Sequence record: OP557969.1
Length of the DNA: 64,000 nucleotides
Direction: 5' to 3' (one strand)
This document shows positions 403 through 63,696 of the stretch, one piece after another; position 1 is the first letter of the stretch; each line of letters opens with the position of its first letter. The notes under the pieces were generated by a model that saw nothing but the letters and a program-made list of their open reading frames with translations, had not been told where the DNA came from and ran no database searches. The position numbers and the translations under genes are program-made.

Positions 403-927
403 ATGTCGAAGAAGGATACTTCGAAGAAAAAGCAATCAGTACATTTCAGTACTGGAAAAGATAACTGGACAACTCCAAAGGATTTCTTTGAAGAGTTGGA
501 TGAGTTATGGGGATTCACACTTGATGCTGCTTGTGTTGATGAGACGGCATTATGTGAAAATTATTTTACACCAAATGACGATTCTCTATCACAGGATTGG
601 GGAAAGAATATAGTTTGGTTAAACCCGCCATATAGTGATTTGAAAACATGGTTATCTAAAGCAGTAGATGCGTATAATAAAGGAGCAACAGTCGTAATTC
701 TAGTTCCATCACGAACTGATACAATAGCCTTCCATGAATATGCTGCAAAAGTTTGTGATTGTATTTGTTTCATTAAAGGAAGATTACGATTTGGTATCCC
801 AGAAGAACCAGAGAAGAAGACAGATTCAGCACCATTTCCTTCATGTCTTATAGTTCTTGATAATTACTTAACTACTGCTAAAATAAATTATCTTAAATCT
901 ATTGGGTTGGTAATGAAGAAACTATGA
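403..927 (+). CDS. Phage DNA N6-adenine methyltransferase (phage Dam-like family)
   Basis: DNWTTP, FTLDAA, VWLNPPYS (NPPY catalytic motif), LVPSRTDT, FIKGRLRF, APFPSCLIV. Confidence 0.9.
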   Translation: MSKKDTSKKKQSVHFSTGKDNWTTPKDFFEELDELWGFTLDAACVDETALCENYFTPNDDSLSQDWGKNIVWLNPPYSDLKTWLSKAVDAYNKGATVVILVPSRTDTIAFHEYAAKVCDCICFIKGRLRFGIPEEPEKKTDSAPFPSCLIVLDNYLTTAKINYLKSIGLVMKKL

Positions 928-1457
928 AAGAAACATGTATTTTATCATTTATGAGATGTAACCCTGTACATAATGGACATGGTTTAGTTTTTGAAAAGGC
1001 CAAAACATTACAAGAACAGTACAATGCTGATTTGAAAATATATCTAAGTACCAGTACTGACAATATAAAAAACCAACTCCCACCTGAACTAAAAATGTAT
1101 TATACAGAGGGATTTTATCCTTCAGTACAAGAGAACATCTACACCGAAGACAATCTATTTGATATAATGAGAGAACTGGATGGAAAATACTTAGATGTAT
1201 TTTTCATATGTGGTTCAGACCGTATTGAATCTTTTCAGAAAACTCTTGACAGTTACAATGGGAAATTATATAATTTTTGTAATATAAAAGCAATTCAAGC
1301 AGGTATTGATCGCCAATCAAGTCAATATAGTTCAACACAAATGCGTAACTTCGCAAAAAATGAAGATTTTGATAATTTTCGAGAATTTTTACCAGGTAAT
1401 GATGAGGACTTAAAAATTCAATTATTTGAAGATGTTATCAAATACATGAGGAAATAA
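924..1457 (+). CDS. HIGH-motif nucleotidyltransferase (cytidylyl/NMN-adenylyltransferase-like)
   Basis: RCNPVHNGH (HxGH), ICGSDR, YSSTQMRNFA. Confidence 0.8.
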   Translation: MKETCILSFMRCNPVHNGHGLVFEKAKTLQEQYNADLKIYLSTSTDNIKNQLPPELKMYYTEGFYPSVQENIYTEDNLFDIMRELDGKYLDVFFICGSDRIESFQKTLDSYNGKLYNFCNIKAIQAGIDRQSSQYSSTQMRNFAKNEDFDNFREFLPGNDEDLKIQLFEDVIKYMRK

Positions 1458-1459
1458 CT

Positions 1460-1753
1460 ATGACAGTACTGTTCAAAACTAATCCAGTTCTTTGGGAACA
1501 AAATGAGCAAGCAGGATTCCGTTCTATCCATGTTGAATACAAGGGTAACACGGTAGTTGCAATTATTGCTAATAAAACTTTAGGAAAATGGACTGCACAA
1601 GTTGTTCCTATGGGATATTCTTATACATCTGATGAGGTAGAATTTTTGGCTGATCTTTATCGTCAAATGCCTTTTATCATTAATGTTCTAGAACAAAGTG
1701 ATACATTAACACATGAAGATGTAATCAACTTTCTTGGAAACTTACATGTGTGA
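1460..1753 (+). CDS. Hypothetical protein
   Basis: ORF track; SD GAGGA; abuts neighbours. Confidence 0.75.
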   Translation: MTVLFKTNPVLWEQNEQAGFRSIHVEYKGNTVVAIIANKTLGKWTAQVVPMGYSYTSDEVEFLADLYRQMPFIINVLEQSDTLTHEDVINFLGNLHV

Positions 1754-2033
1754 TGTGATTAATCTTACTGGATATTTTTTACAAGAATCAATGATTAAAT
1801 TTAGTGAACACTTTCCAGTACTGGATGGTATAGAAATGTGGCATGTTAAGCCACTTTTCAACTCTTTCAGTAAAGAGCACAAAATGTTATTGACAGAAGC
1901 GAGTAAATCTAATAACATATGTGAAATCAAGATTGGTGTGAATGTCTATAAAGGGTTGGTAATCTTTTTTGACAATAACAGCAATTATTTTTATATTGTT
2001 AAGGAGCATTACGTTGACAAATACAAATACTAA
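1746..2033 (+). CDS. Hypothetical protein
   Basis: ORF track 1734-2033; ATG 1746 overlaps the upstream stop. Confidence 0.65.
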   Translation: MCDVINLTGYFLQESMIKFSEHFPVLDGIEMWHVKPLFNSFSKEHKMLLTEASKSNNICEIKIGVNVYKGLVIFFDNNSNYFYIVKEHYVDKYKY

Positions 2034-2625
2034 TACATACTTTAGATATCTTCGCCTTGGTCTTTCCCTACGTCCTATTCGTGGTAAGTGTGATTCGCTT
2101 ACAGATCTTGATTATGCATATGCATTACATCATGAAGGTGTACAGTATGTATTAGGTGATTATGGCGAATTTGAAGAAACAAATGACAGTACTGCTATTA
2201 ATGCAGGTGTTGAAAATCTTAACAACATTGCTAATAGTTCTCGTCATGATATTGTGTTACAAATCCAGAACTTTATTGAACAACACACAGGTAAACGTGT
2301 TTGGTGCTATGTAGGCACTGATGCACAAATGTCAATTTCCTTCGGGAACGATGAAGGATATGTTGCACAGCTTATTATGGATTTTGAATCTGAAGAGAAG
2401 TTTTTAGAATTTAAAGAGAAAATCATCCAGTCACTCGTTGATATGGGTATCCCAGAAGATAAAATGCCAGAAGTTCAAAACATCGATGAATTTGTTTTGA
2501 TTCCATCTGATGAAAAGTATGATGCAATGTTTACTGCTCTTAATATTCCCGGAGTTATTGTGGAGTACTTTGATGATGGTGATGATAGTATCTATATCGA
2601 CCTAGATGATGATGATGATGAATAA
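2014..2625 (+). CDS. Acidic hypothetical protein
   Basis: Likely TTG start 7 nt after AAGGAG (2001-2006); poly-Asp C-terminus; terminator follows. Confidence 0.75.
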   Translation: MTNTNTNTYFRYLRLGLSLRPIRGKCDSLTDLDYAYALHHEGVQYVLGDYGEFEETNDSTAINAGVENLNNIANSSRHDIVLQIQNFIEQHTGKRVWCYVGTDAQMSISFGNDEGYVAQLIMDFESEEKFLEFKEKIIQSLVDMGIPEDKMPEVQNIDEFVLIPSDEKYDAMFTALNIPGVIVEYFDDGDDSIYIDLDDDDDE

Positions 2626-2632
2626 TGCAAAC

Positions 2633-2659
2633 AGCCCGACATAAGTTCGGGCTATTTTT
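2633..2659 (+). terminator. Intrinsic terminator
   Basis: AGCCCGA/TCGGGCT stem followed by ATTTTT. Confidence 0.8.
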
Positions 2660-2671
2660 GTAAGGAAAAAT

Positions 2672-2941
2672 ATGAATTACAAAAATATACAATTCACTTA
2701 TATGGAATTATTTAAATTACACCATAAAAACAGAAGTTCTAACACAATTATTAAAAATGCGTTTACCCATAAACTATGGACAAATTACCTAGAAGAATTG
2801 CGTGAATATTTTGTTGATACTGAAATTTTCATTGGTGGTAAAAAACGAAAAATACTTAGAGTCGATAGTTTTGGTGGTCGATTAGTTCTTTCATATAAAC
2901 TTAATAACGATCTATGTTCTGTGAATTTGGTAGATTTATGA
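2672..2941 (+). CDS. Small paralogue, family A (IQFTY subfamily)
   Basis: MNYKNIQFTY; helical N-half, beta-rich C-half. Confidence 0.8.
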   Translation: MNYKNIQFTYMELFKLHHKNRSSNTIIKNAFTHKLWTNYLEELREYFVDTEIFIGGKKRKILRVDSFGGRLVLSYKLNNDLCSVNLVDL

Positions 2942-3198
2942 ATTATAAAGATTTCCAATTTACATTCAAATATATTCGTAGTATAGCAGATAAAAATAAT
3001 AGTGTGTTTTTAGAAGACACATGTTCTGAAATGATTAATACTGTTCGTGATAGGATTAAAGAAAAATTCAGTACTGTTATTATTAACGATGAACATGCAG
3101 AATTTTCAGATATAATAATTCGACGAGATGGTAAAGTTGAGGTTCAGTACTACACTGATTTTGGATTTACCAGTGTTACGTTGGAGATATTCCCTTGA
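2938..3198 (+). CDS. Small paralogue, family A (IQFTY subfamily)
   Basis: MNYKDFQFTF; ATGA overlap with previous gene. Confidence 0.8.
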   Translation: MNYKDFQFTFKYIRSIADKNNSVFLEDTCSEMINTVRDRIKEKFSTVIINDEHAEFSDIIIRRDGKVEVQYYTDFGFTSVTLEIFP

Positions 3199-3506
3199 GA
3201 TTAAATTTAAATGATATTCAATTTACATATAAAAATATATACGATTTGTATGATATGTATCTTTTTAGTGGGAAGATTGGTAACCATACTGAATCAAAAG
3301 AATCACCATTTATCCAAAATTACTTTGATTACTTAGATGCAGTTGGTGAATATATAAAAAAGAATTACAGTACTTACACTGATGGAGATGATATGTTTGA
3401 ATATTCAGGTATAAAATCTTATCAAGGAATTATCCATGTTGAGTTTCTTGAAAAAACTGATAGGGAGTTTATAGAGATCAAAGTGATGAAGTTAACGGAC
3501 CTGTAA
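3195..3506 (+). CDS. Small paralogue, family A (IQFTY subfamily)
   Basis: TTG start; LNLNDIQFTY. Confidence 0.8.
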   Translation: MRLNLNDIQFTYKNIYDLYDMYLFSGKIGNHTESKESPFIQNYFDYLDAVGEYIKKNYSTYTDGDDMFEYSGIKSYQGIIHVEFLEKTDREFIEIKVMKLTDL

Positions 3507-3516
3507 GGATTGACAT

Positions 3517-3807
3517 ATGATTCTTAATGATATACAATTCACATATAGAGTTTTATACATGGAGTACTCTCATACTGATCCTAAAGACTATCACTATTAT
3601 GAAACCTTTCGAACGATATGGATTGAATTTTTAGATGAATTAAAAGCGTATTACGGTAGTGTTCGTATTGTTCGTGATGGTAGAATTTACACTTGTAAAG
3701 ATGTTGTCAGTCATAGTGGTAAGCTACGATTAGAATTATATACAGAAGGACATGGTTGGATTGGTGTAAATTTACTGGATTTAGATAATGAAACACAACT
3801 TAAATGA
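3517..3807 (+). CDS. Small paralogue, family A (IQFTY subfamily)
   Basis: MILNDIQFTY; SD AAGGA. Confidence 0.8.
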   Translation: MILNDIQFTYRVLYMEYSHTDPKDYHYYETFRTIWIEFLDELKAYYGSVRIVRDGRIYTCKDVVSHSGKLRLELYTEGHGWIGVNLLDLDNETQLK

Positions 3808-4066
3808 CATACAAGTGTTCTATAGCTTCGTATATGAATCTTATGCATCAGAAGGTTACTATGAAAGTGTGTATTATTTTTTATGGCAACAATACCGTAC
3901 TATAGTACGAGATTTATATATAGGAAAATATATAACATACTGTGATAGTAGAATGATGTGCACAGATGTTCTTAGTTATCATGGTAGGTTGGTATTCCAG
4001 TTCGAAGACAGTGAAGGTAGTATGTCTTTAAATGTAAGAGATTTAAAAGGAGTGCATTTTGAATAA
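3788..4066 (+). CDS. Small paralogue, family A (IQFTY subfamily)
   Basis: HNLNDIQVFY ... DVLSYHGRLVFQF. Confidence 0.8.
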   Translation: MKHNLNDIQVFYSFVYESYASEGYYESVYYFLWQQYRTIVRDLYIGKYITYCDSRMMCTDVLSYHGRLVFQFEDSEGSMSLNVRDLKGVHFE

Positions 4067-4259
4067 GTGTCCATATTGTAACAGTACTCAATTAGCTCGT
4101 TTCCGTTTAGATTCAGACTGGGCCACTGGTGCTGGTGATTTCTTTCCTATCAATGATGATGCAGAATATACAGAAGAACAGCACAAAGATTTTGATAAAT
4201 CATGGCGACCTGACATTGAGTGCATTTATTGTCTTAATTGTGAGCGTATACATGACTAA
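4059..4259 (+). CDS. Small zinc-ribbon protein
   Basis: CPYC ... CLNC; TTG start after AAGGAG. Confidence 0.7.
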   Translation: MNKCPYCNSTQLARFRLDSDWATGAGDFFPINDDAEYTEEQHKDFDKSWRPDIECIYCLNCERIHD

Positions 4260-4515
4260 AGCTGAACTGATCGTACAAACACTGCGTTTATTGAGGGATT
4301 TAGATATCCCACGCATGGATGTGAAACTTGAAGATATCTACATTGAATCTCTTAGTGAAGATTACACCGATACCGTAATGATGCTGAATGACGTGCTTTA
4401 TCGTATAGATAGCATCAGTCGTCTTGGAAGTACTTTAAAAGTGAATATGGAAAGAGTTGATAAACTTTATGTACATATATATAGTCTACCTATTTCAATA
4501 TTAAACTATAGATGA
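4252..4515 (+). CDS. Hypothetical protein, probably family A
   Basis: ORF track 4129-4515; ATG 4252 overlaps upstream stop. Confidence 0.7.
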   Translation: MTKAELIVQTLRLLRDLDIPRMDVKLEDIYIESLSEDYTDTVMMLNDVLYRIDSISRLGSTLKVNMERVDKLYVHIYSLPISILNYR

Positions 4516-4802
4516 ATATTATATTGATACAAAAAACATATGCGTTATTGATGAAAGAATATACTAATACTTATGATGAAAAGTGCAGTGCAAATCATAA
4601 TATGTATAAATTCATTACCCAAGAGTACAGGGATTATATATATGCTGCGTTAGTGGGTAGATATTTCAGTACTAAAAAACGTAAAGAACTCAAAGTTGTA
4701 GATATTACTTTTTTCTACAACGGGCATATAACAATTCATGGTGTTGAACATAATTCACAAATATATCGTAACTATTCATTCAATGAGGTAACAATTATAT
4801 GA
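4512..4802 (+). CDS. Small paralogue, family A
   Basis: ALVGRYFS...KVVDITFFYNGHITIHG. Confidence 0.75.
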   Translation: MNIILIQKTYALLMKEYTNTYDEKCSANHNMYKFITQEYRDYIYAALVGRYFSTKKRKELKVVDITFFYNGHITIHGVEHNSQIYRNYSFNEVTII

Positions 4803-4981
4803 GAGTAGTATTTTTTATCTGGAGTCTTTTCTCACTAGCAGTACTGACAGTTTCAGGTGCTTATTCTTTTTTAACAATGAACACATGGTATGTTAATTTA
4901 CTATTCCCAATTGTTGGTGTCGGTTTAGGATTTACTTTACATAGTGTATGTAAGGATTACAATGACAAATACAACAAATGA
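4799..4981 (+). CDS. Small membrane protein
   Basis: Two hydrophobic segments; ATGA overlap. Confidence 0.7.
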   Translation: MRVVFFIWSLFSLAVLTVSGAYSFLTMNTWYVNLLFPIVGVGLGFTLHSVCKDYNDKYNK

Positions 4982-5240
4982 AGTTCTTATTGCTGAAACA
5001 ATGAATATGATTTATTTTATTACTACGGCACAGGATTTGTCTTATCCAGTGAAATCGTTACTTAGGTCAATGTATATTGATATTGTAAAAGAATATTATA
5101 AATCTAAACACAGAAGTATTATTAGTGTTTATCGTGATTATGAAAGGATTCGTATTTTATTCTGGAACAAGAACCGAGTTCGTGAGGAATGTGATCTAGT
5201 AGATTTTAAATTAGAGAATCTTTATTGTTACAAAATTTAA
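4962..5240 (+). CDS. Hypothetical protein
   Basis: ORF track 4944-5240; ATG 4962 after AAGGA. Confidence 0.7.
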   Translation: MTNTTNEVLIAETMNMIYFITTAQDLSYPVKSLLRSMYIDIVKEYYKSKHRSIISVYRDYERIRILFWNKNRVREECDLVDFKLENLYCYKI

Positions 5241-5245
5241 AAGAT

Positions 5246-5253
5246 GATAAATA
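5246..5253 (+). promoter_or_regulatory. Probable T4-type late promoter (GATAAATA, one mismatch)
   Basis: Near match to TATAAATA 44 nt upstream of a putative virion gene. Confidence 0.45.
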
Positions 5254-5296
5254 TTTTACAAAAGAATGTTTTTTTAGAAAAAAAAGGATTTTGTAA

Positions 5297-6781
5297 ATGA
5301 AAGTATGTACGAATTTAAATGTTACTGGTGATATAACGTCTAATGGGATGACGTTAAGCAAGAATCATAATTATGAGAATTTTAGTGACCTACAAGAAAG
5401 ATGTACTAAAATGCTTTTACAATTTGATAAACCTGAAGTATACGATCCTGATATTACTATTACAATAACTACTAAAAATGTAAATTATACATATAAAGGA
5501 CCAATTGATGGTATGTGTGATATAGAAAATCCTTCATTGTATAAAATTTCCATGTATGTATACACTGACAAAGAGTATTTTATAAACGATGTACAATTAT
5601 CAGATGATGGTAGTTTTCATTTTTCTAAAACGAATAATGGCTCAAAACAATTTAGACTAATTAGAATATCTGATAATAAATGGATTGATACATTAGAATA
5701 TGCATTATTGACTAGAAGTTATATAATACCAGAAACTGAAGATTCGCAAGTTAGAAATACAATGAAAGATCGTTGTTACACATATGATCAAGCGGCAGTT
5801 GCTATTGCATTAATGGTACAAAACCACCCAGAGATGGATAGATATGTATATGGTTTGTGTCAATTGGTTGAGGAAAATGGTGGAATAAAATTTTTTGTTA
5901 ATAGGATATCGGCATTTTCCAATAGAGCATACTATAGAATGGGTAATGCTGCATGGGTATTATATGGATTAGCTTTTTACTTATGGAAATTCCCAGATGG
6001 GGTATATGCGAATTTGGCCCGTGAAAAACTTTTGTTAGGGTTAGAATGGGTATCAACTTTTAAAGTAACTACACCCGGTGATAAAAGAGAAGGTTTATAT
6101 ATGGGTGGAAAAGGAAAATTTATCAATAATGGTTCTCAATTTGACCCGAATTACATTGCTAGTTGGTGTGCAATGGAACACAATTTAGATCTTTGGTTTT
6201 TATTTGATCTATGCTCTGTTATTGGAATTCAGAATTATGATACAATAGCAAAGGAATTACATAATAATATAAATGATAAATTGTGGATAGAAAGTGAAGG
6301 ACGTTTTCGTCAAGGTGTACATGAAACAACAGATGATAATGCTGCTGCATTAGATCAATCATCATGGGGTGGTTTGTATTCTTTATATGCAGATGGTAAT
6401 GATACAAAAGCAGTAAAATGTCACAAATATATGGAACGTTTTATGTTTGGTACGTTGGAATGTGAGGGATATACGCCTTATAATAAATTATTTGGTTATC
6501 CAAATGCAGTACAAGGTGTATGGACTGAAGGAACTGCTGGTGTGGCTTTGTTTGAACGTGCATTGGGTAATGACAGAACTGCCGCAAAATTAATTGCTAA
6601 TTTGAAGCCTATATGTGACCCAGTTTATGGATATCGTGACTCATGTGATGACCCAGATTACGATGTTCTTCCAGATTGGCCTTCCTCGTGTAATACAGCA
6701 TGGATTATTCTGGCTATTAACCCACAAGGTTTCTGGAAAGTTGAAGCCCCACTGATGGATATTGGGCTTGTGAAATATTAA
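5297..6781 (+). CDS. Putative virion protein with C-terminal six-hairpin (alpha/alpha)6 glycosidase-like domain
   Basis: YTYDQAAVAIAL, EHNLDLWFLF, ALDQSSWG, VWTEGTAGVAL, WPSSCNTAWIIL recall six-hairpin glycosidase-like proteins; N-terminus resembles the fibre-protein N-termini at 42168-48220. Confidence 0.6.
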   Translation: MKVCTNLNVTGDITSNGMTLSKNHNYENFSDLQERCTKMLLQFDKPEVYDPDITITITTKNVNYTYKGPIDGMCDIENPSLYKISMYVYTDKEYFINDVQLSDDGSFHFSKTNNGSKQFRLIRISDNKWIDTLEYALLTRSYIIPETEDSQVRNTMKDRCYTYDQAAVAIALMVQNHPEMDRYVYGLCQLVEENGGIKFFVNRISAFSNRAYYRMGNAAWVLYGLAFYLWKFPDGVYANLAREKLLLGLEWVSTFKVTTPGDKREGLYMGGKGKFINNGSQFDPNYIASWCAMEHNLDLWFLFDLCSVIGIQNYDTIAKELHNNINDKLWIESEGRFRQGVHETTDDNAAALDQSSWGGLYSLYADGNDTKAVKCHKYMERFMFGTLECEGYTPYNKLFGYPNAVQGVWTEGTAGVALFERALGNDRTAAKLIANLKPICDPVYGYRDSCDDPDYDVLPDWPSSCNTAWIILAINPQGFWKVEAPLMDIGLVKY

Positions 6782-6790
6782 TTATAATAA

Positions 6791-6825
6791 AAAATGAACA
6801 TATAAAAATATATGTTCATTTTTTT
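6791..6825. terminator. Intrinsic terminator (possibly bidirectional)
   Basis: AAAATGAACATATA/TATATGTTCATTTT 14-bp stem with T tract. Confidence 0.8.
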
Positions 6826-6826
6826 A

Positions 6827-6854
6827 TGGACATTATTAATATTTGTGATATAAT
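6827..6854 (+). promoter_or_regulatory. Sigma70-like early promoter with extended -10
   Basis: TGGACA-16 nt-TATAAT with TGTGA immediately 5' of -10. Confidence 0.7.
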
Positions 6855-6885
6855 ATTGGATAAGGAACAATAACTAACACAAGGA

Positions 6886-7623
6886 GTGTGGAAAGTGCTT
6901 GACCGTATCCGTTTTGCCACAGAGATGGCGAATGAATTAAACATGGCAAATTTTCAAATGTTAACATCAGTGATGGCTGAACATGCATGTGCTTATTCTG
7001 TAAGTGGTGTGCAGTGTGGTCAGGAGAATATGTTAGCAGATGTATATAGCGAAGTTCAAAGTAAACAATACAGTGTAAAGACGTACAAGGATAAGTTCGT
7101 TAGTCTTTATATGAATGAAGACATTTCAGAAGACCGCAAATATACTGATTTTATTATTGAACGAAGAGTATCAGGTGTATCTAATCCTAACGCACCAAGT
7201 GATGAAGTTTTTTCAGAAGTACTGAAAGATATATACGAAAATGAATTGAAAAGTAAGAATCATTACAATGTACGTGAAACTAACACTGTGCTCTTGGGAT
7301 ATGATGAAGACGATCAATATTATTATTTCCGTATGACAGAAGTCCCTTTTGAATACAAATCACCAAGTACTACTGCTGTAAAAGAATTTACCGAGAAAAG
7401 CAAGAACTACAAGAAACATGAAGGCAACCGTTGTAGTATAAATGGTTATAATGAAGATGGTGTTCATATATATGAATGGGTTCATCCTAATTGCCAGACA
7501 TATACCCGTTGCTTGAAGAAACGTTATAATTTAGAAGACAATGAATCCTTCTACTTTAAAGTTAAGAAACAAAGCTATACTCGCCCTGAAGATTCAGAAT
7601 TGATGGGTATGGTATATTTCTAA
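6886..7623 (+). CDS. Hypothetical protein
   Basis: 245-aa ORF after promoter; start probably GTG 6895 given AAGGAG at 6881-6886. Confidence 0.8.
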   Translation: MWKVLDRIRFATEMANELNMANFQMLTSVMAEHACAYSVSGVQCGQENMLADVYSEVQSKQYSVKTYKDKFVSLYMNEDISEDRKYTDFIIERRVSGVSNPNAPSDEVFSEVLKDIYENELKSKNHYNVRETNTVLLGYDEDDQYYYFRMTEVPFEYKSPSTTAVKEFTEKSKNYKKHEGNRCSINGYNEDGVHIYEWVHPNCQTYTRCLKKRYNLEDNESFYFKVKKQSYTRPEDSELMGMVYF

Positions 7624-7632
7624 GGAACTGTT

Positions 7633-7914
7633 ATGGATTTTTACCTACACACATGGTCATACGAACAATACATTACATTATATCTTGAGATTATTAATAC
7701 TGATCCCAGATATGGTTGTGATTTTGCTGATATTATAAAAGAGTATGCAGATGAGTTTGAGTTTGTATATCTTGGCTCTGACCTATTCGTGAAGAGTGTA
7801 GGTAAAACCGGACGCATCACTGAGATTGATTATGATACTGTTAGTGTGAATTTCTATGTTGATTTTCCTTGTGATGGCGTTGATGGTGTATATTGTCTAT
7901 ATGAAATAATTTAA
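7633..7914 (+). CDS. Small paralogue, family A
   Basis: VYLGSDLFVKSVGKTGRITEIDYD. Confidence 0.75.
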   Translation: MDFYLHTWSYEQYITLYLEIINTDPRYGCDFADIIKEYADEFEFVYLGSDLFVKSVGKTGRITEIDYDTVSVNFYVDFPCDGVDGVYCLYEII

Positions 7915-7920
7915 ATTTTT

Positions 7921-7945
7921 AGGCCAGCGTTTGCTGGTCTTTTTT
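7921..7945 (+). terminator. Intrinsic terminator
   Basis: AGGCCAGC/GCTGGTCT stem plus TTTTT. Confidence 0.8.
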
Positions 7946-7958
7946 CGCAGGTACAAAG

Positions 7959-8258
7959 ATGATTAGTATAGATTTAATTAACAGTACTATAAAGTTGTTG
8001 GCTGATGTAGTGAGAGAATCCAATGGAACTGTATACCCATCAATGTATAAAATCTTTGAACGATACATCAAGGATTGTAACATATCCTTATATGGACTGG
8101 CGGTTGATATAGACGACCACTATGAAATTAATACTTCATATAAAACAGGAATGTTAATTGGTATTAATATGATGGGATATTTTCCTTATTACTGTATAGG
8201 ATTACCAGATAGTACTATGGTAGATTACCCAGCCAGTACTATTAAATTAAGAGGATAA
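7959..8258 (+). CDS. Hypothetical protein, probably family A
   Basis: Helix then SLYGLAVDI beta region. Confidence 0.7.
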   Translation: MISIDLINSTIKLLADVVRESNGTVYPSMYKIFERYIKDCNISLYGLAVDIDDHYEINTSYKTGMLIGINMMGYFPYYCIGLPDSTMVDYPASTIKLRG

Positions 8259-8265
8259 AACTAAA

Positions 8266-8844
8266 ATGAATGTATTAGAATTAAGTACTAAGCTTATTAG
8301 TATGCGTAATGAGTGGTACGATTGGTTTTATAAAGGCACTGATATGGATTTTTCAAAATATCCATTTATGGAATCAGGATGTGATGCAAACTACCGCTGG
8401 TTGAGCAAAAGTGATTCTGGTTTATTCATTCGAATTGATGATAGTGGTCAAGGAATTTTAAAAGATTTAATTCGAGTTGAAGAACTCGTCCATGACAATT
8501 GGTGTGATAATGATCCATACCTTGGAAATATGATTTATGTAAGTGAAAATGATTGCATATTCGTTATCCAGCGTCATGGTGATTCTATGTTTTATGTAGC
8601 AGACAACAGTACACCTGACGGTGCGGCAGCCAGTGAACTTATGCCTAAGATTGGTATATTGGAATTTGGATTACCTGAGCACTTTCAGATTAGTACTTTA
8701 TACGATATTCCACCACTTGAGTTCTTTGAAGAATTTAAATTATACTACAATGATCTTCAAAAATTGAGTTCTGAACATCGAATTGAAATAATAGTCAAGT
8801 ACATGGATGGGACAAAATTAACCGATACGGGGATAGAATTTTGA
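8266..8844 (+). CDS. Hypothetical protein (family B, E-x-x-F-Q motif)
   Basis: GLPEHFQISTLYDIP. Confidence 0.75.
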   Translation: MNVLELSTKLISMRNEWYDWFYKGTDMDFSKYPFMESGCDANYRWLSKSDSGLFIRIDDSGQGILKDLIRVEELVHDNWCDNDPYLGNMIYVSENDCIFVIQRHGDSMFYVADNSTPDGAAASELMPKIGILEFGLPEHFQISTLYDIPPLEFFEEFKLYYNDLQKLSSEHRIEIIVKYMDGTKLTDTGIEF

Positions 8845-9530
8845 TTAAAGATTTAGATAGAATTTTATATGTACTAAGGGGTGTGATTACATTGCATCCA
8901 CAGATTAATCGCATGGAGCGTGTATTTGAATTAAAATCAATAGAAACTCCATATTCACATATATCAAATGTAGTTGGATCATTCAGTACTGAAGACTCTC
9001 CATATGATATTTGTGTATGTGAAGTACAACCAAGTTCGGATATTGGATTTGCTATTTTTGATAAAAATCGAAATCTTATTAGTATGTTTCAGTGCAATAA
9101 TCCTTTTTGGAAAACATGCCTGTATCCAGAGTGGGCTATGCTTGATCCAACAAAGAGTAACATTAAAGTGTACGACTCTAAAAACAAAGAAGTCGTTATT
9201 GATTTGGATGAGTCAATGACTGAGGAAGAACACTTTCAGTTAATGATGTTGCGAGCTATGCCTGAATACAATGCAATGATTAACACTGTGAAATATATTA
9301 ATGATACTATGCAATCATTGCGTACACATGAGTTTTGTCATCCAGTATTGTATGAAAATTTAGATTTAGACTTCAGTACTATTAAATTTAAAGATAATGT
9401 TGTAAATTACATTCAAGAGAATGTTAAATTTGATTTTATTAATACTATGAATAATAATCCAAAAACAAATTTCAGGCATCAGTATAATGAATCGCTCTCT
9501 AATGGACGCGATACCAGTTGGTGGAAATAA
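8841..9530 (+). CDS. Hypothetical protein (family B)
   Basis: TTG start; SMTEEEHFQLMML. Confidence 0.75.
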   Translation: MIKDLDRILYVLRGVITLHPQINRMERVFELKSIETPYSHISNVVGSFSTEDSPYDICVCEVQPSSDIGFAIFDKNRNLISMFQCNNPFWKTCLYPEWAMLDPTKSNIKVYDSKNKEVVIDLDESMTEEEHFQLMMLRAMPEYNAMINTVKYINDTMQSLRTHEFCHPVLYENLDLDFSTIKFKDNVVNYIQENVKFDFINTMNNNPKTNFRHQYNESLSNGRDTSWWK

Positions 9531-9531
9531 T

Positions 9532-9795
9532 ATGAATATCCAAGATAGATTACAATTGTTGTGCACACTTGAACAAGCTGCTTATGAACTTGTTAATAAA
9601 ATCTCTGAAGAACTTCCCAAAGGAACTAGAGTTCGTGTTCGTGAAATGGATTATGTAACGGGTGAAATTGAAGAAAAAGTTTTAACAGTGGTTAAAGTAA
9701 CATACTATGAGTCAGAGCTATCAATTCAATGTAAGTCAGATAATGGTTACATTTCCTACTATGGCACTGATATAGAGATGGAGGTAATCAAATGA
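9532..9795 (+). CDS. Small paralogue, family A
   Basis: LPKGTRVRVRE...KVTYYESELSIQC; ATG 9532 after GGA. Confidence 0.75.
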   Translation: MNIQDRLQLLCTLEQAAYELVNKISEELPKGTRVRVREMDYVTGEIEEKVLTVVKVTYYESELSIQCKSDNGYISYYGTDIEMEVIK

Positions 9796-10934
9796 CCCTT
9801 TTACAAATATATGAAGATTTGATGCACTTATGTAATACCCGTGAGGCTTTCTTTTATGTAGATCATAAAAGTCCTGCTGGTGGCACATATCGTGTATTCA
9901 GTTATCGACTAGCATCATATACTGATTTCATGCAACCGAATGCATTGGAAACCCGTGGTTCTATGTGGGAAATCGATGACGATGGCAACATGATACGTTG
10001 TGCATCACGTTGTATGAAAAAGTTCTTTAATGCTTACGAAAATCCTGCTACGATGTTCCCTGCTGATACCAAATGTGATGACATTGCAGTAGTGATGCCT
10101 AAGTTGGATGGTTCAATTATCAGTTCTTACCGTGATAATGATGGTATTATTCGTTGTAAATCACATACCTCATTGTATTCTGACCATGCAATTAACAGTA
10201 CTCGACTAATTAACGAGAACCAGAATTTGTATCAGTACATTGATGAAGCTGAACGTTTGGGTTACACGGTTAACATGGAGTACACAAGCCCAGAGTACCG
10301 AATCGTATTGCCATATCAGGTAGAACAACTATTTGTTCTAAACGTCCGTCATCGTGTAAGTGGTGAATTGTTGTGTGGTAAAGCATTACGCGAAAAGTTT
10401 CCTTGTCTTTCACAGTACAGCACCAATATGACAGGTAAAGATATTCATCACACGTTTCCGGTAAGAAATACATTTCGTGAAAGTGTTGAAGAAGTTCATA
10501 AAATGCTTGATATTGAGGGTTTTGTTTGTATTCTAAAAGATGGGACAATGTGTAAAATAAAGACGGATTGGTATAGTTCATTACATCTAACAAAAGACAG
10601 TATCATTATTGATTCACATTTGTTCGAAGCTGTGTTAAATGGTTCAAGTGACGACTTGAAACAATTATTCAGTACTGACGAATATGCTATGCAAAAGATA
10701 TTGAGAATGGAACAATTGGTATTTTCGTGCTATAATTCATTACAAGATGAGGTAGAAAACTTCGTCAATACACACAAGCACTTGGGACGAAAGGAATTCG
10801 CAATGAAGGTTCAGGAGTGTTTGACTAATGAACTAAATCGTCAGGGCTTGGCCTTTGCAATGTATAACAATAAGTATGTTGATTATAAAGAAACTCTTAT
10901 CAAATACATGAAAGTAGTACTAAAGGACTTTTAG
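9792..10934 (+). CDS. rnlA: RNA ligase 1 (T4 RnlA family)
   Basis: FSYRLASY, ETRG, MKKFFN, KLDGS (KxDG adenylation motif), TVNMEY, IEGFV, CKIKTDWY. Confidence 0.93.
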   Translation: MTLLQIYEDLMHLCNTREAFFYVDHKSPAGGTYRVFSYRLASYTDFMQPNALETRGSMWEIDDDGNMIRCASRCMKKFFNAYENPATMFPADTKCDDIAVVMPKLDGSIISSYRDNDGIIRCKSHTSLYSDHAINSTRLINENQNLYQYIDEAERLGYTVNMEYTSPEYRIVLPYQVEQLFVLNVRHRVSGELLCGKALREKFPCLSQYSTNMTGKDIHHTFPVRNTFRESVEEVHKMLDIEGFVCILKDGTMCKIKTDWYSSLHLTKDSIIIDSHLFEAVLNGSSDDLKQLFSTDEYAMQKILRMEQLVFSCYNSLQDEVENFVNTHKHLGRKEFAMKVQECLTNELNRQGLAFAMYNNKYVDYKETLIKYMKVVLKDF

Positions 10935-10963
10935 TATAATCTATAGCCTAAGCACAAGGAGAA

Positions 10964-11221
10964 GTGATGGCTAAACCTAAGTATAGAAATGACGGTTCCC
11001 TTTCTCCAACAGAGTTCAGGAAGATACAAGAAGAAATCGATACATTACAGCACAAACGCTCTAAGAAAGGTGTGAAGATTAGTAAGAAACGAATCGAGAA
11101 TACTTTCGGTTGTAGTAGTACTGAATATAAAAAGAAAAGGAAACCGAAAGATGTTAGACCGAGAATATATGATATTACTCGTTATACATCAAGACGTGAA
11201 AATAAGTTTGATCCACTATAA
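10964..11221 (+). CDS. Basic hypothetical protein
   Basis: Lys/Arg-rich 85 aa; SD AAGGAG. Confidence 0.75.
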   Translation: MMAKPKYRNDGSLSPTEFRKIQEEIDTLQHKRSKKGVKISKKRIENTFGCSSTEYKKKRKPKDVRPRIYDITRYTSRRENKFDPL

Positions 11222-11230
11222 GGAGTTCAT

Positions 11231-11461
11231 ATGAAAGTTGAAGTTCAGCATAGTATTGTTCAAGATATGTCGGTAGTGAAATTTCATTCTCTGAAAGATT
11301 ACTTCAGGTGTATCAAGTTTCTAGAAGAATCTCATTTACAGTGGACTCCATTGAAATACAGTTCATTTAATGATACAGCTAGTATTCGTTGTGATGAATC
11401 TGTACTTGTAAAAATTACAAAACGATTTGGGTTAGGTAAAATTAATGAGCACAGTAAATGA
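11231..11461 (+). CDS. Hypothetical protein
   Basis: ORF track; SD AAGGAG. Confidence 0.75.
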   Translation: MKVEVQHSIVQDMSVVKFHSLKDYFRCIKFLEESHLQWTPLKYSSFNDTASIRCDESVLVKITKRFGLGKINEHSK

Positions 11462-11699
11462 CCTAAAATACTACAACCAAACTGCGGATACCTTTATTAC
11501 CCATTTATATGAAGAATTCAGTCGTATCCGCAATGAATATACTGGTAAATGTATTTTATATAGCTTTTATCATAGTGGTGAAATTGAACTTGCTTACATT
11601 ACTAAAGTGAAGTTTTCAGATGACTATCAATTACTCTTTGAATTAGACAATAGTTTCGTTATTGAAGCTAATTTGATAGTTGATGTACTAGATAAGTGA
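11445..11699 (+). CDS. Small paralogue, family A
   Basis: IRNEYTGKCILY. Confidence 0.75.
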   Translation: MSTVNDLKYYNQTADTFITHLYEEFSRIRNEYTGKCILYSFYHSGEIELAYITKVKFSDDYQLLFELDNSFVIEANLIVDVLDK

Positions 11700-11705
11700 G
11701 GACAC

Positions 11706-12020
11706 ATGAATAAAGAACTTGCTCAAAAAGGCATTGATCAGTTAAAGTACATTGAAAAGGAACTAATAGAATCAGTTGAATTAATGGTCGAAGATTTCGT
11801 GTTTGATTTTAAGAAAACATTGATTGGATGTAAAGTCAAATGCTGGGACCATACTATCAGGGAATGGTTTAGTACTATAATCCTTGATGTTAAAGTATCG
11901 CGTACTGCTTTTGGTAACTTAGTAAATGGTGAATGCTTTGTATACACTGAATACAATAACGGAACAAGACACCTTTCAAAAGGATGGCACAGACTCGAAG
12001 ATGTAGAATTCATTGAGTAG
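11706..12020 (+). CDS. Small paralogue, family A
   Basis: FKKTLIGCKVKCWD; SD GAGGA. Confidence 0.75.
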   Translation: MNKELAQKGIDQLKYIEKELIESVELMVEDFVFDFKKTLIGCKVKCWDHTIREWFSTIILDVKVSRTAFGNLVNGECFVYTEYNNGTRHLSKGWHRLEDVEFIE

Positions 12021-12032
12021 TAAGGAGTAATA

Positions 12033-12965
12033 ATGCCGACTATCACACTAACAGTTGGTTTACCTGGATGTGGTAAAACAACATGGGCAGTACAAGAGAT
12101 TAAAAAAGCCAAATCCAAGACTATCAATATCAACCGTGATGATATTCGTGAATCGATGGCTGGGTCACATGATGCTTACAAATTCAATGATGCTAATGAG
12201 AAGTACGTAACTAATTTACAGTTCAGTGCAGCAAAATTAGCAGCAGAGAATGGTTGGAATATTATTGTATCCGACACAAACCTTAAACCACATTTCCGTG
12301 AACAATGGAAAATGTGGGCTAAAGATAATGGTTATGATTATAAAGAAAAGAACTTCTATGATGATTTTGTACCAAAGGAAGACCGTGGTGCAGATGTTCA
12401 TGAATTCTTTAAGATTAAAGAGTTTGTAAAACTTTGTAAGAAATATAACCTCCAGCGTGAGCGTTCAGTACAAGATAATATCATTGACACAATGGCAGAT
12501 ACGTACTATTATAGTAAGGCATTGCATATTGGTTACTATGGTAATTCTCGTGAAGAAGCGATTATCGTTGATATCGATGGAACTCTTGCTCATAAATGGA
12601 ACCGCAATCCATTTGATGAAAGTACAGTTCTCCAAGATACACCAGACGAAGAAGTTATTTTGTCTGTTATCGCCGAAGCAGTTTTTCATAAACGCAAGAT
12701 TATTGTCATGAGTGGTCGTACTGAAGGGTGTCGTGCTGACACAGAACAGTGGTTGAAGAATTGGGGTGTTCCCTACGATGCATTGTTTATGCGAGGCATT
12801 GATGATAAACGTCCCGATGATGTTGTTAAATTCGACCTGTACATGAAAAATGTGGTTGATCATTACGATGTTAAAAAAGTATATGATGACAGAGCACAAG
12901 TCGTATTCATGTGGCGTAAACTACTTGGATTGAAAGTGATGCAAGTTGCGGAAGGAAATTTTTAG
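12033..12965 (+). CDS. pseT: Polynucleotide 5'-kinase/3'-phosphatase
   Basis: P-loop GLPGCGKTT, NRDDIR, IIVSDTNL; HAD domain DIDGT, SGR, RPDDVVK, YDDR. Confidence 0.95.
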   Translation: MPTITLTVGLPGCGKTTWAVQEIKKAKSKTININRDDIRESMAGSHDAYKFNDANEKYVTNLQFSAAKLAAENGWNIIVSDTNLKPHFREQWKMWAKDNGYDYKEKNFYDDFVPKEDRGADVHEFFKIKEFVKLCKKYNLQRERSVQDNIIDTMADTYYYSKALHIGYYGNSREEAIIVDIDGTLAHKWNRNPFDESTVLQDTPDEEVILSVIAEAVFHKRKIIVMSGRTEGCRADTEQWLKNWGVPYDALFMRGIDDKRPDDVVKFDLYMKNVVDHYDVKKVYDDRAQVVFMWRKLLGLKVMQVAEGNF

Positions 12966-12969
12966 TACA

Positions 12970-13000
12970 AAAAGGGATCAGTATATGATCCCTTTTTCTT
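12970..13000 (+). terminator. Intrinsic terminator
   Basis: AAAAGGGATCA/TGATCCCTTTT stem plus T tract. Confidence 0.85.
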
Positions 13001-13015
13001 TTAAGGTACATTATA

Positions 13016-13192
13016 GTGAATGTAACAACACAAATGTTATTACGAAAAGATTATTTAGAAAATATAGAAAGATTCTATAGAATGTCTTTGTATGAAAATA
13101 AGCATAAAAATTATAATTTTGATAAACTGCTAAATTCCAGTACTGATGATTATTTATTTTCATCAATGTTTTATGTGAGAGGATTATTGTAA
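13016..13192 (+). CDS. Small hypothetical protein (58 aa, below ORF-track cutoff)
   Basis: GTG start after AAGGT; its stop overlaps the next ATG; fills an otherwise empty gap. Confidence 0.5.
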   Translation: MNVTTQMLLRKDYLENIERFYRMSLYENKHKNYNFDKLLNSSTDDYLFSSMFYVRGLL

Positions 13193-13452
13193 TGGATAAA
13201 TTTCATACAGATATAACACAGATAGGTAACCTTATCAATAGTCTAATTACTGATTTAGAAGAAAAGTACTTAGGGCGAAATGTATACGTAGAAATGTATG
13301 AAACATATGGTGTTATTGATATGATTTATTATAGTGCATTGAAATATGAAATACGTTTAACTGTATGTTTATATGAAAAAGGTACATTTAAAAGAAGTTC
13401 TGCAATCCGTCAAGTCGGAGTTGACGACATTGAATTATACGAGGAACAATGA
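13192..13452 (+). CDS. Small paralogue, family A
   Basis: LEEKYLGRNVYV. Confidence 0.75.
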   Translation: MDKFHTDITQIGNLINSLITDLEEKYLGRNVYVEMYETYGVIDMIYYSALKYEIRLTVCLYEKGTFKRSSAIRQVGVDDIELYEEQ

Positions 13453-13703
13453 TGTTTGAGCAGGACTTAGAGCTATTCAAAAGTTATATTGAGTACTTAG
13501 TTACTTTAGAAAAAGAGCTAACTGCAAAGTACAAGGGTGTTCGTGTTCAGTGCTGGTATGACGATTGTGATTATAAACGTGAACTTATTATTGACCGAAT
13601 ATATTTCATCGATGGTGTATTGAATGTACATGGTGTTAATGATTTTGGACATTCATATACTTATTCAAATAATGCAAAATTCAAGAGGATTGACAATGAA
13701 TGA
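13449..13703 (+). CDS. Small paralogue, family A
   Basis: LTAKYKGVRVQC...IDRIYFIDGVLNVHG. Confidence 0.75.
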   Translation: MMFEQDLELFKSYIEYLVTLEKELTAKYKGVRVQCWYDDCDYKRELIIDRIYFIDGVLNVHGVNDFGHSYTYSNNAKFKRIDNE

Positions 13704-13998
13704 GTATTATCAAAATTTATTCAAATACATAAAACTAATAGATGATCTTGCTTTTGATTTTCTTAGTACTGATAAAGTTGATGAGCCTTTATATTATGAT
13801 TGTATTGGTTCACTTTGTTCATATGAAAAAGAAATATTAGAAAACAATTTACCATCAACGCTCTGTATTATCAATGGTTCTAAAGCGGTGGTGGTAGATG
13901 TTAATTTTTATAAATCACTTAATACAATTGTTTACAAGTTTGATAACACTGGGTTTAATCATATAACAGGTAATATTAAATCTGTGAGGTTCTTATGA
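13696..13998 (+). CDS. Hypothetical protein, probably family A
   Basis: ORF track 13624-13998; ATG 13696 after GAGGA. Confidence 0.7.
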   Translation: MNEYYQNLFKYIKLIDDLAFDFLSTDKVDEPLYYDCIGSLCSYEKEILENNLPSTLCIINGSKAVVVDVNFYKSLNTIVYKFDNTGFNHITGNIKSVRFL

Positions 13999-14291
13999 AT
14001 TTAAAACATTTGTTAGAACAGGCTCATTTATTGTATAGCTGTGCTGATGGTTCTGGTAAGGAGTATAGTGAAGTTTATTTAGAACTGTTTAGAACGGAAA
14101 TACACATAATTAGAAGATACTTAATTGATAATAAAACTGAAGTAAAAGTTAGATACCATAATGGTACTTTAAAGAATGGTATAATTATTGGATTGATAGT
14201 TTCACGAATGTCTAGTAATATTAAAGTTGCAATTAGATTAATGACTGATGATGGTGTCTACACCATAGAAGTAAGTGAGATTATATATTAA
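13995..14291 (+). CDS. Small paralogue, family A
   Basis: TEVKVRYHNGTLKNGIIIGLIV. Confidence 0.7.
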   Translation: MNLKHLLEQAHLLYSCADGSGKEYSEVYLELFRTEIHIIRRYLIDNKTEVKVRYHNGTLKNGIIIGLIVSRMSSNIKVAIRLMTDDGVYTIEVSEIIY

Positions 14292-14597: not shown

Positions 14598-14623
14598 GAC
14601 ATATCTTGAATCGGTGATATAAT
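14596..14623 (+). promoter_or_regulatory. Sigma70-like early promoter
   Basis: GAGACA-16 nt-TATAAT with GTGA before -10. Confidence 0.6.
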
Positions 14624-14655
14624 TTCATTACAACACTGACAATGGAGTAGATGTT

Positions 14656-15550: not shown

Positions 15551-15552
15551 CA

Positions 15553-15885: not shown

Positions 15886-15887
15886 TA

Positions 15888-16354: not shown

Positions 16355-16356
16355 TA

Positions 16357-54918: not shown

Positions 54919-54919
54919 A

Positions 54920-62197: not shown

Positions 62198-62213
62198 AAA
62201 AGGTAGGTAAATT

Positions 62214-62546
62214 ATGCTAAATCTAAACATTCAAGGCAACATTGATATCACTCCAGCAATCCAAGATGCTATTTACAATGAAGCAAAAAGTCTGGATAAG
62301 TACCGTACTTCTTCAGTACTAGACATTGGTGTTCATGTTAAGAAAGAGCATAAAACTCAATATGCTGTAACTTTAACTGCTGGTAGTAAATCAGTGACTG
62401 CTGATGATGCTGATTTGTATAAAGCAATTGTTGAATCTTTTGATAAGATGGAAACTGTATTCAGTAAAGACAAAAGCATTAAATTGCACCGCCGAAACCA
62501 CCCAGAACATCCAGTTCTTGATGATTTGACAGAAAACGAAGAGTAA
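62214..62546 (+). CDS. hpf: Ribosome hibernation promoting factor / RaiA-like protein
   Basis: MLNLNIQGNIDITPAIQDAI...ADDADLYKAIVESFDKME. Confidence 0.8.
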   Translation: MLNLNIQGNIDITPAIQDAIYNEAKSLDKYRTSSVLDIGVHVKKEHKTQYAVTLTAGSKSVTADDADLYKAIVESFDKMETVFSKDKSIKLHRRNHPEHPVLDDLTENEE

Positions 62547-62554
62547 TATATACT

Positions 62555-62585
62555 AAAGGGACAGAATTAATCTGTCCCTTTTCTT
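62555..62585 (+). terminator. Intrinsic terminator
   Basis: AAAGGGACAGA/TCTGTCCCTTT plus T tract. Confidence 0.85.
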
Positions 62586-62599
62586 ATGGAGTTTTAATT

Positions 62600-62995
62600 A
62601 TGAATTGTTCCTGGATGGAAATTGTAAAATCTCTAATATCAACACATGATATGGACTTACCTGAACACCTAGTTATTAATAGATGGTTCTATCCATATCC
62701 AGATAACCGTTGTGTTGGAATTGGATTTTTTATTAATGAAAAATCTCAATATATTGTATTAATTGAAGATTATACAAAAACCAATATTGCGTTCTCAATT
62801 GAGTTGAATGTAGATCACATAAAATACTACACCAATAAAATGGATGAAGACGATGGTGATGTTATAATTCCAGCAGAAATAGACGAAGCTTCATTTTTTC
62901 AGTTATCATTAATTCATAATGTATCTGATATTACTTATGATAATGTGAAAGACCTTTTTATATTGTACAATAAACTGTATAATTACTTTATATGA
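62600..62995 (+). CDS. Hypothetical protein (family B)
   Basis: EIDEASFFQLSLIHN. Confidence 0.75.
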   Translation: MNCSWMEIVKSLISTHDMDLPEHLVINRWFYPYPDNRCVGIGFFINEKSQYIVLIEDYTKTNIAFSIELNVDHIKYYTNKMDEDDGDVIIPAEIDEASFFQLSLIHNVSDITYDNVKDLFILYNKLYNYFI

Positions 62996-63379
62996 TTGAG
63001 GTGTAAGTTGAGAAATACATTAATTAAAGTTAATTTATCACATTTCGACCCATATCAGAAATATGAAGAAAGTCGAAGATATAATATTAATGAATATTTC
63101 ACAATATATTTCAATAGAACATATAGCATGATCATCATTACTATTTGTAATCATATAAAAATTTGTATAACAAAAGACACAATAACTTTATACATTCAAG
63201 GCAAAGAAACTGATATTCCAACAGATTTGGATGAAGATGGATATGCTCAAGACGAATTCTTGAGAGATCACTTGTTGATTGAGTACAGCACTTATGCATT
63301 GATTAATTTCTACAAAGTAAATTACATTAAGTGGTTGTCTGGTGAATGTGATGATGGTATAATAGAGTATAATATATAA
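62996..63379 (+). CDS. Hypothetical protein (family B-like)
   Basis: DLDEDGYAQDEFL; start uncertain. Confidence 0.65.
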   Translation: MRCKLRNTLIKVNLSHFDPYQKYEESRRYNINEYFTIYFNRTYSMIIITICNHIKICITKDTITLYIQGKETDIPTDLDEDGYAQDEFLRDHLLIEYSTYALINFYKVNYIKWLSGECDDGIIEYNI

Positions 63380-63510
63380 TATATAATGAATACAATTATG
63401 CTTGAAGAAGATTAGGGTGTTTATTAACAAGAAATCGACGTGAACAAAGAACCAAAATACAAGCCTAATGGCTTCTGGGAACGTCTCTTTGATTGGCTGA
63501 TGGGGGAGTG

Positions 63511-63696
63511 ATGGAATATACAATATGTGCTATTATTTGTATCTTAGCTTTAATCTGTGGTGTTGGTGTGATGGTTTATTGTGATGTAGAACCCAGTACT
63601 GAAGTAGGTACAACCATCACATTTAAACCTGGTGTTAAAATTAATGATACCTATTGCTACAATCCAAACACAAACCGCTATGAGATTTGTTTATGA
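63511..63696 (+). CDS. Small membrane-anchored protein
   Basis: ATG after GGGGAG; N-terminal TM. Confidence 0.7.
   Translation: MEYTICAIICILALICGVGVMVYCDVEPSTEVGTTITFKPGVKINDTYCYNPNTNRYEICL

Follow-up and report, generated by a model that had tools for sequence, protein, structure and literature searches.

AGTACT, a dispersed palindrome of jumbo phage ph0011 and its relatives, is a selected site that may be read by a symmetric DNA-binding protein

Several described systems rely on short motifs read across a whole genome or on operators shared by many promoters, and the hexamer AGTACT, dispersed through a 64,000-nt stretch of Escherichia phage ph0011 (OP557969.1), resembles a number of them and matches none. 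The stretch analysed (hereafter, the window) corresponds, at 100% identity, to positions 62001–126000 of ph0011 (genus Asteriusvirus, 348,217 bp), a jumbo myovirus of the RaK2/121Q-like type. Like the GATC sites of the Dam/SeqA/MutH system of E. coli, AGTACT is a palindrome that occurs as solitary, near-randomly placed sites, clusters in regulatory DNA and appears to be read on double-stranded DNA; GATC, however, is a 4-mer that needs no enrichment, whereas the conservation of AGTACT depends on its flanks. The SlmA-binding sites (SBS) of E. coli contain an identical AGTACT core and are likewise short palindromes dispersed in coding DNA, with a symmetric protein as their reader, but there are ~50 of them on a 4.6-Mb chromosome as opposed to 748 AGTACT copies in 348 kb of phage DNA, and SBS do not lie in promoters, where the phage hexamer is also found. 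Among global regulators, KorA/KorB of RK2 act at about a dozen operators, while p6 of phi29 and TF1 of SPO1 recognize no discrete sequence motif. These regulators (p6 together with p4 in phi29) resemble the ph0011 system in having an element at fixed −35/−10 positions of many promoters and in binding far from promoters, with a preference for genome ends in phi29; the phage AGTACT differs from them in being a discrete hexamer with hundreds of intragenic copies.

A further likeness is to Chi, the FtsK-orienting polar sequences (KOPS), DNA uptake sequences (DUS) and uptake signal sequences (USS), all of which exceed chance copy number by far, occur in all reading frames, shape peptide content and are kept at a certain density rather than at exact positions, with turnover between relatives. 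Chi and KOPS are oriented, whereas AGTACT is palindromic and its one-flank forms show no polarity. As with uptake-sequence tags, AGTACT reaches a high intragenic copy number in all frames and affects the encoded peptides; we know of no uptake-like or packaging-like receptor for it. Finally, the same hexamer is the target of the ScaI and Eco255I restriction-modification enzymes, but phages avoid such targets, whereas AGTACT is 8-fold enriched in ph0011 and only its flanked copies are conserved.

The window contains ~118 genes, all except one on the + strand (93% coding), the majority of them small and of unknown function. AGTACT occurs 122 times between positions 448 and 63600, with 116 copies within annotated genes and six in intergenic DNA. 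The spacing of the sites is near-Poisson (mean 522 bp, coefficient of variation 0.94), and within genes there is at most a weak preference for position, the sites being slightly denser toward gene starts. Density is highest at positions 1–21000 (+ strand), where 56 sites (2.7 per kb) fall among ~45 small genes of mostly unknown function. The original prediction, made by hand from the sequence, had given about 120 sites, about 55 of them in the first 21 kb, a composition-based expectation of around 20, at least 30 extended octamers and four perfect 12-mers; all of these figures agree with the recount, and only its estimate of ~31% GC has to be corrected, to 33.4%.

The number of AGTACT sites goes far beyond what composition, codon usage or amino-acid sequence can explain. 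Base composition (order 0) predicts 21.5 copies in the window, Markov models of order 2 and order 3 predict 29 and 47, respectively, and dinucleotide shuffles returned 16.5±3.6 (maximum 29). When synonymous codons were shuffled within genes, 42.8±5.0 copies were expected (z ~16), and shuffling of codon order gave 29.9. The excess over the null is present in each frame (AGT-ACT, 61 versus 20.2; xAG-TAC-Txx, 23 versus 5.4; xxA-GTA-CTx, 32 versus 11.6), and the window proteins contain more Ser-Thr (128 versus 88) and Val-Leu (149 versus 102) dipeptides than expected. Bias toward the central tetramer is likewise insufficient, as the 383 GTAC of the window would yield 42 AGTACT if their flanks followed base frequencies. 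An order-4 Markov model does come near the observed number (100.6); this expectation is circular, however, as the signal is already present in the 5-mers that enter it, AGTAC (214 observed, 68 expected) and GTACT (180 observed, 61 expected). A codon or dipeptide artefact was rejected on the synonymous and codon-order shuffles. The original prediction had held that amino-acid usage does not account for sites in all three frames, and the 3–4-fold excess in each frame bears this out. It was to be given up if the enrichment vanished under a codon-preserving or fourth-order Markov null, or came down to GTAC bias with no preference at the flanking bases; with the circular order-4 figure set aside, the excess survives the codon shuffles and the GTAC calculation, and the flanking bases do show a preference.

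This preference is mirror-symmetric. Across the window sites, C precedes the hexamer at 60/122 and G follows it at 59/122, with T-rich positions from −2 to −4 and A-rich positions from +2 to +4. Mirror symmetry in spite of one-directional transcription argues that the signal acts through double-stranded DNA or self-complementarity rather than through codons. The best form in Asteriusvirus is TTC-AGTACT-GAA, a preference that spans 12 bp; the highest-ranking 7-mers and 8-mers in the window all derive from TTCAGTACTGAA, and none of the one-mismatch neighbours of AGTACT is depleted. Relative to the synonymous null, bare sites are modestly enriched in the window (35 versus 21.5), sites with one preferred flank more so (28 versus 7.9 and 27 versus 9.5) and the octamer CAGTACTG most (32 versus 4.5). 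The same gradation was observed over the whole of ph0011, where comparison with composition gave 241 versus ~73 for sites with neither flank, 153 versus ~17 for those with C only, 186 versus ~23 for those with G only and 168 versus ~5 for CAGTACTG. Enrichment thus rises in steps, each flank contributing a roughly multiplicative increase, which is what additive binding energy would produce. The one-flank forms show no polarity and are mixed evenly in all 25-kb bins of the genome.

The 32 full copies of CAGTACTG, the class with the strongest enrichment and the best conservation, lie between 447 and 63601, with first bases at 447, 1052, 1464, 1816, 2187, 3069, 4839, 8984, 10670, 13138, 14727, 17875, 18762, 19490, 20198, 20733, 24094, 27225, 28688, 32162, 32465, 34407, 36008, 40356, 41730, 44539, 53560, 56010, 56742, 57766, 60026 and 63594. 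Exact matches to the perfect 12-bp palindrome TTCAGTACTGAA are found at 8982–8993, 20196–20207, 36006–36017 and 41728–41739.

Comparison with phage 121Q, which aligns with the window at 85.7% identity over 43 kb, indicates that the flanked sites are under selection. The hexamer is kept in 121Q at 67/90 aligned sites, whereas control hexamers matched for codon phase are kept in 46% of cases. Conservation rises with the flanks, from 9/24 for bare AGTACT, which is indistinguishable from controls, to 16/20 with G only, 18/21 with C only and 24/25 for CAGTACTG (8-mer controls, 38%); for flanked sites, the difference from controls is highly significant (p=1e-12). There is also turnover, with 58 aligned sites unique to 121Q and 23 unique to ph0011. 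The most frequent single change is A/T at position 4 (15/36), which we read as the cheapest change to the protein in all frames (Ser/Thr, Val/Val or Phe/Tyr). The alignment thus shows strong, flanked sites held in place, with total density maintained too, and bare hexamers drifting. AGTACT is maintained even at the expense of the protein sequence. The original prediction of a graded palindromic consensus kept within coding DNA is upheld by the symmetric flanks, the flank-graded conservation, the enrichment in all frames and conservation across four genera.

The enrichment extends well beyond the window. The complete ph0011 genome contains 748 AGTACT, compared with 91 expected (order 1; z=69), at a mean spacing of ~465 bp, together with 168 CAGTACTG (3.4 expected) and 19 perfect 12-mers. 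Density is 6 per kb at 0–20 kb, 2–4 per kb up to 130 kb and past 280 kb, and 1–1.5 per kb in the structural/replication block. Phage fEgEco12 starts at approximately the same point as ph0011 and has a direct terminal repeat of 20,993 bp; the peak at 0–20 kb therefore probably coincides with the terminal repeat of ph0011. As envisaged in the original prediction, related genomes were searched, and AGTACT proved to be the top hexamer in the stretches sampled from five RaK2/121Q-like phages, namely 121Q (145 per 50 kb), RaK2 (119), GAP32 (253), CBB (112) and the Erwinia phage pEa_SNUABM_50 (Eneladusvirus; 175 per 40.5 kb). The pattern therefore spans four genera of 350-kb phages (Asteriusvirus, Alcyoneusvirus, Mimasvirus and Eneladusvirus). 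In sampled stretches of the distant relatives PA5oct (3 copies) and XacN1 (0 copies), AGTACT is not enriched, nor is it in the unrelated E. coli phage rV5 (10 versus 10.1 expected). Among the genera, the hexamer core is constant and the preferred base at −1 varies (C in Asteriusvirus and RaK2, A or C elsewhere), with G at −1 disfavoured in every genus. A 100-kb sample of E. coli K-12 contains 16 AGTACT versus 24 expected, so that phage DNA is ~13 times denser in the hexamer than the sampled host DNA. A sharp depletion in the host, which would have formed a self/non-self contrast, was considered on the basis of a 50-kb sample (3 copies) but rejected, as the 100-kb count is only mildly low.

The abundance of AGTACT stands out against a genome in which 21/64 hexamer palindromes are absent and GCGC does not occur once in 348,217 bp (173–282 expected): the phage drops one third of hexamer palindromes and every GCGC, yet carries AGTACT at ~8 times expectation. 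GCGC is also absent from each sampled 40–50 kb of 121Q, RaK2, GAP32, CBB and the Erwinia phage; its frequency is normal in rV5 and PA5oct and drops to about half in XacN1 (73 versus 164.5 expected), and among the genomes compared its absence coincides exactly with AGTACT enrichment; in E. coli, GCGC occurs at ~7 per kb. A GCGC-specific nuclease, of phage or host, or a clash with phage CpG methylation is a possible cause of the loss. The sampled stretch of the distant jumbo phage XacN1 (positions 150–200 kb) shows an analogous pattern with other words, GATC being absent (221 expected) and GATATC enriched (38 versus 9.9).

Outside the window, in the first 25 kb of ph0011, AGTACT occurs in early, intergenic promoters of the sigma70 type, where it takes up two fixed positions relative to TATAAT. 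At offset −27 (21 promoters exactly; 26 at offsets −26 to −29), it overlaps the upstream edge of a TTGCAA-type −35 element and is centred at approximately −36.5; at offset −7 (17 promoters), it directly abuts the −10 element and is centred at approximately −16.5. Four promoters contain both copies, ~20 bp apart, and these therefore face the same side of the helix. The same double arrangement is present in GAP32, a phage of another genus and another host, with different flanking bases, and in both genomes the hexamer thus occupies the fixed promoter positions expected of the operator of a global regulator. No AGTACT of the window lies at either offset from a perfect TATAAT, and its six intergenic sites lack promoter context.

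The mirror symmetry, the additive flank effects, the 12-bp footprint, the lineage-varying flanks and the operator-like promoter positions fit a double-strand recognition site under selection that is read by a two-fold symmetric DNA-binding protein of the phage lineage, our leading candidate and one that we hold with about as much belief as doubt. As judged from the sequences compared, a constant core with genus-varying flanks would be easier to reconcile with a co-evolving DNA-binding protein than with an enzyme of the restriction type. Such a protein, bound at −36.5 and −16.5, would exclude RNA polymerase and shut off early transcription. The intragenic copies, including essentially all of those in the window, would be selected for number or density rather than position, and would serve to place the same protein all along the phage chromosome, where it might act as a phage-specific coat or tag, as a protein reservoir or as a set of transcription roadblocks. 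Of the dimeric phage or host protein envisaged in the original prediction, the symmetric, graded site is retained; a host protein is unlikely, as the sites lack the bases that define SlmA binding and rV5 is unenriched.

Several observations weigh against a symmetric binding protein. A scan of ~80 ph0011 proteins against Pfam and PHROGs, covering methyltransferases, neighbours of the sigma-factor gene, conserved early genes and 40 small open reading frames (ORFs) of the window, detected no DNA-binding domain; the majority of the scanned genes are orphans. A spacer-less 8-bp palindrome is compact for a helix-turn-helix dimer and more typical of ribbon-helix-helix proteins or of restriction/modification enzymes. 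The promoter evidence lies outside the window and partly reflects duplicated promoter cassettes. No preferred distance between AGTACT copies was found outside promoters; beyond the first 25 kb, 87 pairs are spaced by no more than 80 bp, and a hand Poisson estimate from the site density there is also ~87, so cooperative binding at these sites is not indicated. The reason given for selection of the intragenic copies is itself inferential, and the methylation reported for RaK2 DNA (PMC3622015) would also allow a methylation-based reader. Of the early genes, one encodes a ParE-like toxin domain and has a conserved upstream partner, phrog_8127, of which a second copy is present (L003:18547–19258 and L003:5861–6127). 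The ParE-like gene and its partner are conserved in GAP32 and the Erwinia phage, and both partner genes have their own promoters with AGTACT pairs, but the model of phrog_8127 (pLDDT 74) returned no fold match in the PDB at E below 0.001, a further point on the negative side. One of the 40 small hypothetical ORFs scanned between window positions 1460 and 23336 resembles T4 Gene 33, though the Pfam match is weak (E=0.007); no homologue of gp33, the T4 late-transcription co-activator, had been reported in this clade by the CBB paper.

Whatever its reader, the motif implies a sequence-reading system central to organizing, regulating or marking the DNA of these non-nucleus-forming jumbo phages. 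It also offers a handle, in the form of a 12-bp probe, a ScaI digest and ~40 promoters with fixed sites, for finding the reader and for study of the early-to-late switch, and may have implications for how Asterius-like phages persist in E. coli isolates, as reported (PMC12768965; bioRxiv 10.1101/2024.12.31.630880). No mention of the AGTACT motif was found in the papers searched on CBB, RaK2, Sharanji, fEgEco12 and PA5oct, text searches for AGTACT or CAGTACTG with phage terms returned nothing relevant, and no ScaI digest of such DNA was found in print.

The most serious competitor, though we consider it unlikely, is that AGTACT is a methylation site comparable to GATC, marked by a phage methyltransferase, with readers of full or hemi-methylation using the dispersed copies and the paired promoter copies coupling early-promoter activity to replication. 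The hexamer is a palindrome of the restriction-modification type with a GATC-like layout (solitary, Poisson-spaced genome-wide and clustered in regulatory DNA), and the promoter pairs lie ~20 bp apart on one face of the helix, the spacing that SeqA prefers for GATC pairs. A Dam-family adenine methyltransferase (PF05869) is encoded clade-wide, with its gene at 403–927 (+ strand) of the window; as no other adenine methyltransferase was found to be conserved throughout the clade, it is the sole candidate for the writer. Only three records match the second adenine methyltransferase of ph0011 at ≥60% identity, so that this enzyme is not clade-wide, and the third methyltransferase was rejected as the AGTACT writer, as it is not conserved in the clade and rV5 has a homologue yet no enrichment. 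For a methyltransferase target, all copies should be equivalent whatever their flanks; the lack of conservation of bare AGTACT (9/24 against 24/25 for CAGTACTG, with controls at 46%) and the 12-bp, genus-varying preference are both unusual for such a target. We know of no case of selection for more 6-bp methylation sites. The methylation of RaK2 DNA, which speaks for a phage writer, is reported as CpG methylation by bisulfite (PMC3622015, data not shown there) and would fit the C5 cytosine methyltransferase, although the paper makes no such assignment. In ph0011, the C5 enzyme (genome 287301–289181) is interrupted by a Hint/LAGLIDADG intein, and its N-terminal part is closest, among solved structures, to DNMT3-type CpG methyltransferases; AGTACT contains no CpG. 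Moreover, EcoRI and HindIII digest fEgEco12 DNA in the predicted way, which argues against broad adenine methylation, and the annotation contains no MutH- or SeqA-type reader, although no systematic search was made for one. A bolder version, in which AGTACT is a lineage-private epigenetic mark, the phage equivalent of GATC, written on ~750 selected sites, is decidedly doubtful; were it true, hemimethylated pairs at −36 and −16 would switch the early promoters off after replication, and phage enzymes would tell old strand from new, or phage from host DNA, across an unmodified 350-kb genome. Improbable, too, is a role for the sites in serving an enzyme of limited reach along the DNA, which would require a site every few hundred bases, such as a start site for primase, a site-specific nickase for clamp loading or recombination-dependent replication, or a strong topoisomerase II site. 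The mean spacing of ~465 bp, the conservation of density rather than position (with 58 and 23 unique sites in the two phages) and a palindrome that works on both strands would suit such an enzyme, and the phage encodes a T4-type primase, a topoisomerase II and several HNH or homing nucleases. It does not predict two fixed promoter positions conserved across genera or a steep density peak in the presumed terminal repeat, however; known primase sites are trinucleotides, and the restriction patterns of fEgEco12, which are as predicted, give no sign of nicks.

The identical core in the SlmA consensus (GTGAGTACTCAC, 12 bp) raises the question of whether the sites bind a host protein of the Enterobacterales, for instance this nucleoid-occlusion factor. 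Every motif-bearing phage infects Enterobacterales, and infection with Sharanji (~87% identity to the window over its first 20 kb) leads to filamentation, for which no division inhibitor has been identified and which would follow from a cell filled with SlmA sites. Mutational binding data for SlmA show that G and T are needed at positions 1–2 and a purine at position 3 (GTRAGYRCTYAC), whereas the phage motif has C as its preferred base at position 3, where G is disfavoured in all genera, and lacks G at position 1. There is no match to GTRAGYRCTYAC in the 348 kb of ph0011, GTRAGTACT accounts for 21/1496 half-sites, tblastn detected no SlmA homologue in the phage, and the unenriched rV5 speaks against a general host-driven pressure. 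SlmA-binding sites were rejected on these grounds despite the shared core, and a host protein as reader is very unlikely. Pairing of self-complementary 8–12-mer copies in phage transcripts, that is, a signal at the RNA or single-strand level, would also yield mirror-symmetric flanks, and nearly all window sites are transcribed on one strand. It is nonetheless hardly credible given that close pairs are not in excess, that the copies fixed upstream of transcription starts in two genera argue for reading at the DNA level and that known double-strand RNA enzymes require more than 8 bp. Scarcely tenable is the absence of any function, with AGTACT arising as a by-product of codon or dipeptide usage, GTAC bias, palindrome avoidance or promoter cassettes. 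The order-4 expectation near the observed count, the frequent use of AGT (35% of Ser codons) and ACT (42% of Thr codons) and the similarity of the early promoters to one another would favour it, but the shuffles leave a 3–4-fold excess per frame, the order-4 null is circular, the flanks are symmetric and determine conservation, no one-mismatch neighbour is depleted, and no window site is placed at either promoter offset. Two further readings were rejected. Vsr-type repair would have altered the deamination neighbours AGTATT and AATACT, which are at expectation, and a Chi-like role is incompatible with one-flank forms that lack polarity, the true E. coli Chi being separately enriched.

Among the remaining features of the window, a 2.4-kb AGTACT-free gap, the second largest, extends over 4846–7217 (+ strand) and spans a gene (5297–6781) with no counterpart in 121Q. 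The gap is compatible with recent acquisition of this gene, the sites being not yet gained, though a single gap of this kind is not significant. The large terminase (L006:47509–49854) matches T4-type terminases, among the matches listed, only over residues ~305–781, and the tblastn match in fEgEco12, a near-identical relative, covers residues 315–781 only; for a few of the listed records, such as FL15 and mycobacteriophage Dallas, it is the N-terminal part that is matched. An insertion or an intein-like element may account for the N-terminal third.

In the early part of the genome, a 2-kb stretch without an annotated gene (3.1–5.1 kb; 3080–5076) contains ~17 AGTACT, many in the form TTCAGTACTGA, with GGCTAGA(C/T)GG-like repeats forming a block at ~4150–4290. 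The stretch could serve as an origin or as a signal for packaging or injection. Copies of GCTGGTGG, the Chi sequence of E. coli, number 18 on the + strand of ph0011 (~1.5 expected) and six on the − strand (~0.9 expected). Nine of the + strand copies lie at 3.9–23.3 kb (3978–23321), in or beside the presumed terminal repeat, a placement that suggests protection against RecBCD entry from one end.

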